A DNA stretch of 64,000 nt from Macrostomum lignano. Taxonomy: Eukaryota. A program made the position numbers and the translations under genes. Shown here in pieces: positions 18,928-22,748 of the stretch. The DNA is taken from NCBI GenBank assembly GCA_002269645.1, contig NIVC01000576.1, positions 169,089 to 233,088 of the forward strand, in the 5' to 3' direction. Below the pieces are notes generated by a model that was not told where the DNA came from, did no database searches, and saw nothing but the letters and a program-made list of their open reading frames with translations. Numbering within the stretch: position 1 is the first letter of the stretch; the number at the start of each line of letters is the position of its first letter.

Positions 18928-19254
18928 ATGCCCAGCTGTTGCGTAGTCAACTGTAAACGCAGGGGCGGCGGTGCCGGTATGCCGAAAATGTTTCGCATAC
19001 CGGTTGGACCGCCGGCCAGGCGACAGAAATGGATAGTGGCGCTGCGCCGCGGCGAGCCGTGGCAGCCCAATCCGAATTCGCGGGTGTGCGATTGTCACTT
19101 TTTAACCGGGGCCCCGGTTAACGATCCGAATCACGTGGACTATGCGCCTTGGCTGTTCTCCTGGACTAGTCCGGATAAAATCGGCAATGGGCATCTGCGT
19201 CTAAAAGAGTACAATGATTTGGTTAGCGAGATTGGTAAATCGAAATCATTGTAA
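18928..19254 (+). CDS. THAP-domain (C2CH zinc finger) protein or exon
   Basis: MPSCCVVNC...FRIP...RRQKW...RVCDCHF...YAPWLF has the THAP signature and an AVPTIF-like box. Possible phase-1 donor after 19234. Confidence 0.88.
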   Translation: MPSCCVVNCKRRGGGAGMPKMFRIPVGPPARRQKWIVALRRGEPWQPNPNSRVCDCHFLTGAPVNDPNHVDYAPWLFSWTSPDKIGNGHLRLKEYNDLVSEIGKSKSL

Positions 19255-19362
19255 ATTGTTAAGTTCTTAAAGTAAGCTGAAAACAACAGCCTTGACAGGT
19301 CTTAACAGCAAAATTAATATAAATCAATTTCATTCTTGAGTTTTGGCGACAGTGTCGCCACA

Positions 19363-20160
19363 GATAGATACATAAATAGGTAGATAGGTAGATAGATGAT
19401 AGACAGATAGATAGATAAATAGATAGATAGATAGATAGATAGATAGATAGATAGATAGATAGATAGATAGATAGATAGATAGATAGATAGATAGATAGAT
19501 AGATAGATAAATAGATAGATAGATAGATAGATAGATAGATAGATAGATAGATAGATAGATAGATAGATAGATAGATAGATAGATAGATAGATAGATAGAT
19601 AGATAGATAGATAAATAGATAGATAGATAGATAGATAGATAGATAGATAAATAGATAGATAGATAGATAGATAGATAGATAGATAGATAGATAGATAGAT
19701 AGATAGATAAATAGATAGATAGATAGATAGATAGATAGATAGATAGATAGATAGATAGATAGATAGATAGATAGATAGATGATAGATAGATAGATAGATA
19801 GATAGATAGATAGATGATAGATAGATAGATAGATAGATAGATAGATAGATAGATAGATAGATAGATAGATAAATAGATAGATAGATAGATAGATAGATAG
19901 ATAGATGATAGATAGATAGATAGATACATACATACATAAATAGATAGATAAGGTAGATAGATAAATAGATAGATAGATACATAGATAGATACATAGATAC
20001 ATAGATACATAAATAGATAGATAAATTCATAGATACATAGATAGATAGATAGATAGATAGATAGATAGATAGATAGATAGATAGATAGATAGATAGACAG
20101 ATTATAGATAGATAGACAGATTATAGATGATAGATAGATAGATGATGATGATAGATAGAT
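19363..20160. repeat. (GATA)n microsatellite
   Basis: About 800 bp of agat tetramers. Confidence 0.98.
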
Positions 20161-20376
20161 ACGAGTAGATAGATAGGTTGATTGACAGATTAATATATAG
20201 ATCTAATAGTATATAGATTATAGAGTAGGTAAAAGGTGGATAAATTTATACAACAGATAAGATATAAAAACTAATAGGCTATGAGTATATAGTAGGATAA
20301 ATACGCAGATATTTGGATGGATAAAAATGCAAAGCGCACGCAGCGACGAACATCACAATCTTGTTCATGACGCTAG

Positions 20377-20781
20377 TATTTGTTTTGTCAGCCTAACTGA
20401 GAATAAAGCCATCCAAAGTGAGAATCCTGCCTACGCTGACTGCGAAGGGCCTGGCTGCGCGCAGCCTTAGTCTATGGGCCATAGACTATAAAGGACAAGC
20501 AAAGTGATAAAAAGCCATCCAATGTGAGAATCCTGCCTACGCTGAATACGAAGGGCCTAGCTGCGTCCAGCCTAGTCTATGAGCCATAGACTATAAAGGA
20601 CAAGCAAAGTTTTAAAAGACCAATCGATTCTCACATTGGATGGCTTTTTATCACTTTGCTTGTCCTTTATTGTCTATGGCCCATAGACTAAGGCTGCACG
20701 CAGCCGGGCCCTTCGCAGTCAGCGTGGGCAGGATTCTCACTTTGGATGGCTTTGTTCTCAGTTAGGCTGACAAAACCAATA
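20377..20781. mobile_element. Foldback/MITE-like element with ~155-bp inverted arms
   Basis: 20377-20532 is the reverse complement of 20626-20781; the spacer is a second copy of a 106-bp internal subunit. Confidence 0.8.
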
Positions 20782-20970
20782 GTTTAAGTAAGCAATGAAA
20801 GGCCCTATTCAGGTTCTTAGACTGTCAAAAGTTTGCTTATTAAAATTCATTTATTTTGTATTGCTAGCAGTTCTATGTACTATATGCACAGAGTCTAATT
20901 GTCTATGGCCAGAATTTAATTATTTCCCTGTAATTAGCGCCCGTGTTATCTGACTAATTCAACATTTCAG

Positions 20971-22748
20971 TGTCGCCAATCAAGAAGTGTTCAACAGAAT
21001 CAGCATTAGTAGCAACAGCTAAAACTATTAAGGCAATGCAGCCCGCTGCTCAGCAACAACGGAAACGGCTACTGCCCGAGACCTCCGATGTGCTGTTGAA
21101 ACGTTCGAAAGCGGCTGCTGCTGCTGCTGCTGCTGCTTCGTCTAACTCTACTGAGTCTTCTTCTCAAGGCGGCTTGGCGCCCATGGATCTTAGCCGAAAG
21201 AAAGCGCCCGCCCTGACAAGTTCTGGTGGAACTGGCAGCCTTGCTGCTTCTGCCCCCGCTGCTGCTAGCGCTGCAACTGCTGGCAGCGATGAGATCATTG
21301 TGCTGCCAGACGATGAAGAGCAGGAAATCCAGAAGCTAGTTGCTAAGCAGGCTGAGCTAGCCGAATCTGACATTGATTCAGACGCCGCCATGGCCCTGGT
21401 GAAGGAGCAGGCCGTGGTGCTGCGTAAACTACGCGAAAGTCTGCGTAGCGAAGAGTGCAAACTGGCCCTATTGAAGGCTATGCGCCATTCTCAGCAGAGA
21501 TCCGCCTCGGCGCCCGGCTCCAGTCTCCATCATCAGCAACAGAAGGAGAATGGCGCCGTCGCTGGAGCCACTCAATCTGGTGCCAGTCGGTCGGGCGCCT
21601 CAGCTGCAGCTCAAGGCCGTTCCGCTGGCGCAGCGGCTGTCGGCAGCCAGAAGCTGTCGCATCATCAGTCGCCATCTTCGGCAATTGGCCGGTCGCAGTC
21701 GGCCGCCGCGCTGCCAATGAAAACGTCGGCCAGCGTCAGCAGCGGCCAGGCTTCCACTACGAAAGCTACGCCGCCGCCGCCGCCACAGATTAGCCAGGCT
21801 CAGCTAGACGCCCAGAAGGCTCAGAAGAAGCTGGCGTTGCGCAAACAGTTGGAGAAATCCCTGCTGGAGATTCCCAATCCCCAGCCGCCGCCGTCTGAGT
21901 TGAACTTCATCCCGAGCACGGTTACTAACGAGTTCATTGCTTTAGTAGGCCTAGAGGAAGTTGTCCGCAATATCAGCGAATACGATGCCGTACTGAAGGG
22001 CGGCAAGCCAACAGAAGTCAAGTACGTATTCCACCCGTTCACCTGTGTGCAGTGCGGCACAGACTATACACCTGTGTGGAAGCGGGACAAGCCCGGCTCT
22101 AAGAATGTCATCTGCGAACAGTGCGTGTCCGTCAATCAGAAGAACGCCATTCGCAAGGATCACACGGCCAGGCTCAAGACCGCTTTTGTTAAAGCGCTCA
22201 AACAGGAGGAAGAAATTGAAAAAGAATTCAAACGCTATTCGGCTAATCCGCAGCTGGCTGCTCAAGCTTTTCCGCATCTGCTTCCGCCGCCGCCTCAGCC
22301 TCAGGCTCAGCAGCATCAGCAGCAGCATCATCACCAGCAGCAGCATCATTCTCTGCATGGCATGTCTTCGCTAAGCTCTGCGCACAGGTCATCCAGTTCG
22401 TTGCACAGCCTCTCCGGCTCCAGTGCCAGCCGCCTTGCTGCCACCACTCAGCAGCAGCAACAGCAGCAGGCCGCCGCTGCCGCCGCCGCTTCTCAGGCTG
22501 CCGCCACCGCAGCCGCTGTTGAACAGATTCAACGCCAGCAGTTCCTGCACGCCCAGCTGCAGGCCATATCCCAGCTATACCCGGCTGCCGGAGGCGCCAG
22601 CGCCAGCTCTTATCCCTACACTATGCCGGCTAACTATTTGACTATGCTGCAGCAGGCTATGCGACAAAATATGGGATTTAATCCCACCAGCCTCTGGTCG
22701 GCTATGAGCGCCGCCTCCCAGCCGCAGCAGCCGCCTGGTAAAAAGTAA
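20971..22748 (+). CDS. GATAD2: GATAD2/p66 (NuRD subunit, simjang-like), large terminal exon
   Basis: CR1 coiled coil LRKLRESLRSEECKLALLKAMRHSQ; CR2 KLALRKQLEKSLLEIP..PPP.ELNFIPS...FIALVGLEEVV; GATA-type finger CVQCGTDYTPVWK...CEQC; PMDLS and IIVL motifs. Branch point ctgactaat and acceptor tttcag at 20970 (phase 1), so the start codon is in an upstream exon. Confidence 0.93.

Follow-up and report, generated by a model that had tools for sequence, protein, structure and literature searches.

The 64-kb stretch of DNA analysed here (contig NIVC01000576.1; hereafter the window) carries a candidate gene in which an exon for a THAP zinc finger is followed, on the same strand, by an exon for p66/GATAD2, a subunit of the nucleosome remodelling and deacetylase complex (NuRD). 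Judged from sequence, the best model of the locus is that the two exons form one gene. We consider it probable that this gene has two coding exons and encodes a 694-aa THAP–p66 (GATAD2-type) protein of a spiralian outside the Neodermata, and likely that the splice it requires, 19234|20971, is real. Both domains are intact, they are compatible in phase and frame, and the same architecture with the same intron phase is found in other spiralians. p66/GATAD2 is normally seen as a non-targeting scaffold of NuRD, partner transcription factors or MBD2 being what brings the complex to DNA; were p66 to carry a THAP finger itself, NuRD would have a sequence-specific targeting subunit built in. No paper in the literature searched links THAP with p66 or GATAD2, and the architecture, though undescribed there, is already present in the public annotations of four species. 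The parts of the proposed gene are as follows.

18928..19234, forward strand: coding exon 1, with the ATG, the THAP zinc finger, a 25-aa tail and the first base (G) of a split codon
19235..20970, forward strand: proposed phase-1 intron of 1,736 nt, with donor GTAAAT at 19235-19240 and acceptor tract ...ttcaacatttcag ending at 20970
20971..21035, forward strand: exon 2 linker of 65 nt, made up of the other two bases of the split codon and 21 complete codons
21036..21038, forward strand: canonical p66 start codon, methionine (Met) 23 of the open reading frame (ORF) and Met 125 of the fusion
21036..22748, forward strand: p66/GATAD2 body, with Pfam P66_CC and GATA and a Q/A/S-rich tail

A first-pass annotation of this DNA had placed the THAP exon, its phase-1 donor at 19234 and the p66 acceptor at 20970, and both the sequence and a splice-site scan return them at those positions; the joined ORF of 694 aa (...DLVSEI-V-SPIKK...) was likewise reproduced by joining 19234 to 20971. 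The donor, ATTG|GTAAAT, is the last in-frame GT ahead of a stop codon at 19252-19254, 20 nt past it, and G+C falls from 0.57 to 0.29 exactly at this point. The acceptor, ...catttcag|, ends 13 nt after the last in-frame stop (20955-20957). Beyond it the p66 exon measures 1,778 nt, its ORF in the p66 frame running from 20970 to 22748 with the stop TAA at 22746-22748.

The THAP zinc finger comprises residues 1-77 (nt 18928-19158) of a 102-codon stretch starting with the ATG at 18928. Pfam recognizes it as THAP (PF05485) with an E-value of 2.5e-9 and 38.2 bits against a curated cut-off of 23.9, the match covering only profile positions 1-58 of 87. The C2CH zinc ligands, C5-x3-C9 (or C4-x4-C9) followed after 44 residues by C54-x2-H57, fit the THAP signature tested (C-x2-4-C-x35-50-C-x2-H), and the core residues P25 (in FRIP), W35 and F58 are invariant across alignments. 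The closest THAP relative outside the flatworm p66 proteins is P0123, a 971-aa protein from an ENA contig that consists of a single ORF with seven tandem THAP domains (Pfam E=7e-89). When DPNHVDYAPWLF of the window is aligned with DPNQPGYVPTIF of the P0123 repeats, the C-terminal box of AVPTIF type is YAPWLF. A pairing of GNGHLRLKEYNDLV with GTGHRRMRLKDTAV had first been taken as a feature common to the window and flatworm THAPs; it was downgraded because the P0123 alignment shows YAPWLF to be the true AVPT-type box of the window. An AlphaFold2 model of the exon is of low confidence (predicted local distance difference test score, pLDDT, of 53.6 overall and 66-71 for residues 1-58), with a strand at 21-23, a helix at 29-38 and a strand at 52-54; the top three Foldseek matches of this low-confidence model are the THAP structures 2JM3, 2JTG and 2D8R (E=0.17-1.6). 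Both by sequence and by fold, 2JM3 is the best solved-structure match of the window THAP.

It is very improbable that this exon is an inert P-element-like relic or a decaying pseudo-exon, neither translated nor spliced to p66. Such a relic would be in line with the low AlphaFold confidence, with the absence of close relatives in the word-index search, where the window THAP alone gave no match (a metagenome scan with it gave none either), and with the recurrent derivation of THAP domains from P-element transposases, for which PMC8700633 cites Quesneville et al. 2005. The 102-codon ORF, however, is intact from its conserved MPxCC start and has kept all zinc ligands and core residues. With a G+C of 0.57 and a G+C at third codon positions (GC3) of 0.63, the exon has the same GC3 as p66 and equals the host coding sequence, against a G+C of 0.3-0.4 in the flanks. 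It holds the single THAP-like sequence in the window, directly upstream of p66 and on the same strand. A terminal-inverted-repeat search found no inverted-repeat pair flanking the exon, and among the window ORFs no transposase, or transposase catalytic domain, follows the THAP, as the first-pass annotation had observed. Host–transposase fusion ('HTF') genes are cited in the same paper. In such genes, a transposase-type DNA-binding 5' exon is spliced to host effector exons; the window locus differs from these in having no transposon hallmarks left, so that a transposable-element origin for the window THAP exon is putative.

Comparison with other species supports a single gene. A word-index search with the joined protein returned 91 p66 homologues (best E=8.5e-67) and one THAP+p66 match, a Dreissena polymorpha isoform, while an exhaustive HMMER search covering 1.84 billion representatives returned 1,142 of them, 119 at E<=1e-30. 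The domain-architecture search of related species proposed in the first-pass annotation thus found four proteins that combine THAP, P66_CC and GATA.

OON22454.1 (P0150), Opisthorchis viverrini: 'THAP domain protein', 588 aa, a full THAP and then p66
TPP63728.1 (P0169), Fasciola gigantica: 'Transcriptional repressor p66-beta', 548 aa, THAP plus p66
CDS25454.1 (P0227), Hymenolepis microstoma: 'gata zinc finger domain containing 2b', 735 aa, THAP plus p66
KAH3837039.1 (P0218; also XP_052278331.1), Dreissena polymorpha: p66-beta-like isoform X1, THAP plus p66

Pfam confirmed THAP, P66_CC and GATA in the Opisthorchis, Hymenolepis and Dreissena proteins, while for the Fasciola protein the C2CH pattern and the alignment to p66 served as the check. 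HMMER aligned OON22454.1 in one stretch (query 1-611 to protein 1-556), and the window protein is collinear with all four, making five in all. Annotation of the same architecture in three flatworms and a bivalve supports the earlier proposal that the THAP and p66 exons belong to one gene; it also removes the accompanying statement that no precedent was known for p66, since THAP–p66 is predicted in Opisthorchis, Fasciola, Hymenolepis and Dreissena alike.

Gene structure points the same way. A same-strand THAP directly upstream of p66 also occurs at loci L004, L005 (Schistosoma bovis, OX103955.1) and L008. The intron reads G|GTAAAT...cag|TG in the window, G|GTAAGT...tag|AA in Opisthorchis and T|GTAAGT...cag|CC in S. 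bovis, and the proposed window junction has the same phase, and the same position relative to the nuclear localization signal (NLS), as the other two. The Opisthorchis THAP exon ends in GGC G|GTAAGT (phase 1), and exon 2, 7.6 kb later, begins ...gatag|AA AAA CGG AAA, that is, with the NLS E-K-R-K; because no Met precedes the conserved motifs, the THAP exon must supply the start codon. In S. bovis, a 141-aa THAP ORF is annotated as its own gene and precedes p66 by 6 kb on the same strand (10001-10426, with p66 at 16421-16629, in the numbering of locus L005). Its donors T|GTAAGT and G|GTCCAT are both in phase 1, as is the p66 acceptor catttcag|CC, and conserved coding sequence (EKALSNEPLGE) extends upstream of the annotated p66 Met. 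These S. bovis sequences are most simply read as one gene split by annotation, and the short THAP-only models of Fasciolopsis, Rodentolepis, Mesocestoides and Anoplocephala may have arisen by the same error. The comparison is also of value for annotation: in several flatworm genomes, a single gene appears to have been divided between a 'THAP protein' and a p66 truncated at its 5' end.

The neodermatan THAP–p66 proteins have their elements in the same order as the window protein: an N-terminal THAP, a linker and a KR-rich NLS are followed by xLDLS, an acidic DDVIxLSEDE, the CR1 coiled coil, the CR2 GATA finger and a Q/A-rich tail ending in KK. Their genes, too, have the THAP on its own first coding exon, then a phase-1 intron, and a next exon that starts before the NLS. 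Unlike the window, they have more introns, one of about 33 nt, and Opisthorchis lacks the internal canonical Met. Their CR2 is also much more diverged, at 44% identity to the window against ~73% for other spiralians. Cestode and trematode p66 THAPs are very strongly conserved (77% identity between the two groups), yet they are not specifically nearest to the window THAP.

The most serious rival to this model divides the locus into two genes, namely a stand-alone 108-aa THAP protein (18928-19254, stop TAA) and a 570-aa p66 translated from the ATG at 21036, with 20970 serving as the acceptor of an intron in the 5' untranslated region (UTR), as a spliced-leader trans-splice acceptor, or as no splice site at all. 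We regard it as unlikely. The first-pass annotation had stated that the p66 exon has no in-frame ATG at its start; this was mistaken, as the ATG at 21036 (codon 23) is the canonical one. It stands in the context aaggcaATGc, with a purine at -3. The N-terminus that it opens, M-QPAAQQQ-RKR-LLPETSDVLL-KRSK, matches spiralian p66 N-termini and fits the pattern of full-length spiralian p66, M-x(4-9)-[KR]KR-...-KRxK, by which Met 21036 is the orthologous canonical start.

The linker between acceptor and canonical start is open in the p66 frame only, with 2 stops in each other frame. Its G+C is 0.39 and its GC3 0.27, against a GC3 of 0.62 for the coding sequence, and only 8 of 549 coding-sequence windows are as low. 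By its GC3 and its flank-like G+C, the 22-codon linker looks like former 5'UTR, a non-coding composition that suits two genes. On the single-gene model the THAP isoform would translate it, and an isoform lacking THAP would have it in its 5'UTR. The first-pass annotation had put the chance of phase agreement at one in three; as the phase term this stands, and multiplied by the probability that the linker is open under local composition (~0.23) it gives a joint chance of ~0.08 for an accidental in-frame join, which is not negligible. A match 'ALVAT' between the linker and homologue P0002, first read as conservation of the 22 upstream codons, was rejected: in P0002 the matching residues come after the NLS-2 intron, so the two stretches are not homologous in position.

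Several further observations weigh against the single gene. The conserved ATG at 21036 with its purine at -3 means that p66 could be made without THAP, and a THAP-less isoform is annotated in Dreissena. An in-frame stop closes the THAP ORF just past a donor that is only moderate (4.3 bits on a generic matrix in the splice-site scan). In several flatworm annotations the THAP exon forms a short gene by itself (S. bovis, Rodentolepis nana, Mesocestoides corti, Fasciolopsis buski), and the Dreissena junction departs from phase 1, being in phase 2. The THAP exons can be called orthologous only tentatively, because P0123, which is unrelated to p66, matches the window THAP at least as well (36-37% over 78 aa, C-terminal box included, E=3e-12) as does the p66-linked THAP of Opisthorchis (38% over 58 aa, E=3e-11). 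The nearest p66 relative is only ~48% identical, and the joined, THAP-only and Met23 proteins have no exact match in a 15-billion-protein collection. Finally, inspection of up to 10 kb upstream of p66, as far as the contig allowed, revealed no THAP exon in Dimorphilus, Owenia, Lineus, Mya, Mercenaria or two further spiralian contigs.

Against two genes stand, first, the flatworm data: the tails of the short flatworm THAP models are unconserved and resemble read-through into the intron, the S. bovis splice sites and upstream coding conservation indicate an annotation split, and exon 2 of Opisthorchis depends on another exon for its start codon. A THAP with a mere 31-aa tail would, moreover, have no effector part. 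The remaining argument lies in the 1.7-kb gap, where two repeats make up ~1,250 of the 1,736 nt.

19362..20202, unstranded: (AGAT)n microsatellite of ~212 copies, detected by Tandem Repeats Finder (TRF)
20377..20781, unstranded: foldback inverted repeat resembling a miniature inverted-repeat transposable element, with 156-nt arms that are 96% complementary

Because it consists mostly of these repeats, the intron leaves no room for an obvious separate promoter, and upstream ATGs at 20795 and further downstream would burden any unspliced 5'UTR beginning upstream of ~20900. The foldback, which has nested inverted repeats, lies 190 nt ahead of the acceptor.

The p66 body contains the following elements.

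21060-21068, forward strand: NLS-like RKR
21099-21110, forward strand: NLS-like KRSK
21180-21194, forward strand: PMDLS
21291-21320, forward strand: EIIVLPDDEE
21387-21497, forward strand: CR1 coiled coil (P66_CC)
21825-22229, forward strand: CR2 block, 135 aa
22044-22124, forward strand: GATA-type finger, C-x2-C-x19-C-x2-C, inside the CR2 block

P66_CC (PF16563) is matched with E=5e-8 and 32.9 bits against a cut-off of 26.4, the window CR1 reading LRESLRSEECKLALLKAMRHSQ where the consensus is LQAELRNEEAKLVLLKKLRQSQ. The Pfam GATA score, 24.6, falls under the cut-off of 26.8, which is also missed by two of the three comparator p66 proteins scanned. CR2 is 73% identical to p66 of nemertean, annelid and brachiopod type, and the C-terminal tail is divergent and lacks the motif QRQYLLDMIP. 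The PMDLS noted in the first-pass annotation is present where indicated above, and may be a CtBP-type PxDLS motif capable of recruiting CtBP. It is no innovation of this gene: P[MIV]DLS, preceded by 'SDKEN..D.', occurs in most of the 91 spiralian p66 homologues, becoming [VA]LDLS in the flatworm proteins. The literature searched contains no statement on p66–CtBP binding. Conventional p66/GATAD2A/B proteins (human p66α/β, Smed-p66, spiralian p66) share with the window CR1, CR2, the pair of NLSs and the acidic stretch, and differ from the window model in having no THAP domain. Planarian p66 has been described with a GATA finger only (PMC5011480), and the planarian p66/NuRD papers examined mention no THAP for p66.

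The single large p66 exon had suggested in the first pass that a processed p66 landed behind a transposon-derived THAP exon, giving a young, lineage-specific chimera. We find this origin improbable; on this account the genome would also have an ordinary p66 gene with several exons at another locus. In its favour, the window lacks both the KRxK|LxEE intron of many spiralians and the Dreissena intron after the Met exon, the former 5'UTR is contiguous with the coding sequence, the tail is divergent without QRQYLLDMIP, and an intact ORF2 of a long interspersed nuclear element (LINE), with endonuclease and reverse transcriptase, lies 12 kb away. Yet a search for retrocopy hallmarks found neither a poly(A) remnant nor any A-tract where a 3' end could plausibly lie, and no target-site duplication or direct repeat longer than 10 nt flanks the exon; around the THAP exon, no terminal inverted repeat or transposase remnant is seen. 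CR1 and CR2 are well conserved, as expected of a working copy, and the flatworm THAP–p66 genes are multi-exon and old, as the identity between trematode and cestode THAPs shows. That p66 is intronless is correct for the window exon, but it is not a peculiarity: spiralian p66 genes as a rule have a giant exon or just a single one. In Dimorphilus the whole of p66 sits on one exon, the Lineus gene takes 1,889 nt for 540 aa, and many p66 homologues are single ORFs on genomic contigs, running from an acceptor inside KRxK|LxEE to the stop. The lack of one or two small 5' introns present in others may reflect intron loss or an old retroposition. Elsewhere in the family, the first two p66 coding exons of Mya arenaria (CP111014.1, locus L012) are duplicated ~9 kb upstream: exons at 972-1073 and 1519-1599 correspond to those at 10001-10102 and 10548-10628, with identities of 100% over 34 aa and 96% over 27 aa.

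If THAP and p66 are indeed one gene, its expression could be pictured as follows. Transcription would begin upstream of 18928, and the THAP exon, spliced at 19234|20971, would be read through the 22 former 5'UTR codons into the canonical p66 body. A palindrome lies in the upstream region.

18073..18228, unstranded: palindrome with 63-nt arms, 90% complementary, with CCAAT on both arms and a central CACGTGAC

It sits 700-850 nt upstream of the THAP ATG and could serve as a promoter element or represent a small mobile element; by its position, it may belong to the THAP–p66 gene. In conventional p66, the partner of CR1 is MBD2/3, and those of CR2 are CHD4 and histone tails. In the predicted protein, the THAP C2CH module would supply sequence-specific DNA contact, the p66 body would recruit MBD2/3 via CR1 and CHD4 via CR2, and through the product NuRD, or a p66 sub-complex, would acquire a domain that targets it to specific sequences. 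An isoform of 570 aa that lacks THAP, starting at ATG 21036 from an alternative promoter or a different 5' exon, may coexist; it is plausible by analogy with Dreissena isoform X2 and with C. elegans ctbp-1a/b.

Two systems illustrate such a design. As in the window, Dreissena isoform X1 has its THAP exons upstream of the canonical-Met exon, which is reached in frame via former 5'UTR (NIIT-M); isoform X2 lacks THAP and begins at the canonical Met, and the terminal p66 exon, giant as in the window, measures 1,981 nt and encodes 660 aa. Unlike the window, Dreissena has the THAP on two exons (phase 0), a phase-2 join to p66 and two extra small exons before the terminal one, and its THAP is of a different type (MPTKRCSWGTC...), with 27% identity to that of the window. 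The C. elegans protein CTBP-1a, whose THAP structure is PDB 2JM3, likewise unites an N-terminal THAP with a corepressor and comes in THAP (a) and THAP-less (b) isoforms. Mutations C5A and C10A in its THAP abolish CTBP-1a rescue (bioRxiv 10.1101/2020.06.09.143248). CTBP-1a differs in that its partner is CtBP, a dehydrogenase-like corepressor and not a NuRD subunit, and in coming from a nematode; the resemblance is one of design, and the fusions are not homologous.

The distribution of the architecture is patchy, since annelid, nemertean and other bivalve loci show no THAP in the upstream sequence inspected, up to 10 kb. Either an old fusion has often been lost, or its THAP lies further upstream, or the domain has been acquired repeatedly. 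We tentatively suggest, as a possibility somewhat short of even, that three or more independent captures of a THAP exon by p66 took place within Spiralia: one in the neodermatan flatworms, one in Dreissena and one in the lineage of the window. This suggestion is based on differences in THAP type, exon structure and junction phase (1, 2 and 1, respectively), and on the annelid, nemertean and other bivalve loci without a THAP exon. If true, a 5' THAP exon on p66 would be a recurrent evolutionary route to sequence-targeted NuRD, parallel to the nematode THAP–CtBP. The occurrence of the same predicted design in parasitic flatworms, a bivalve and the spiralian of the window constitutes a testable evolutionary pattern. 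Taken alone, the window brings a modest gain, namely an improved gene model and a further example of the architecture.

Other features of the window include four ORFs.

5744-8857, reverse strand: intact LINE ORF2 of 1,037 aa, with endonuclease and reverse transcriptase
9940-11493, forward strand: 517-aa ORF whose reverse-transcriptase domain is partial, matching profile positions 64-204 of 205
25208-28570, forward strand: 1,120-aa ORF of T/P/Q/A/S-rich pentapeptide repeats with a C-terminal hydrophobic segment
40550-41395, forward strand: ORF with a C-type lectin domain (E=2.2e-7)

The LINE protein has no exact match in the 15-billion-protein collection, and the window contains no Rfam or transfer RNA matches. 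The repeats of the ORF at 25208-28570 are TTAQP/TTSQP with a 15-nt period and ~124 copies, the opposite strand being open as a by-product of the repeat; from its sequence, the product looks like a membrane mucin. The window as a whole is eukaryotic, and minisatellites and LINE fragments are abundant in it. TRF returned 59 rows, with unusually dense arrays of 14-54-nt minisatellites, several of them giving rise to long, spurious ORFs on both strands. An (AGAC) microsatellite of ~314 copies at 57888-59154 is very long, like the intronic (AGAT).

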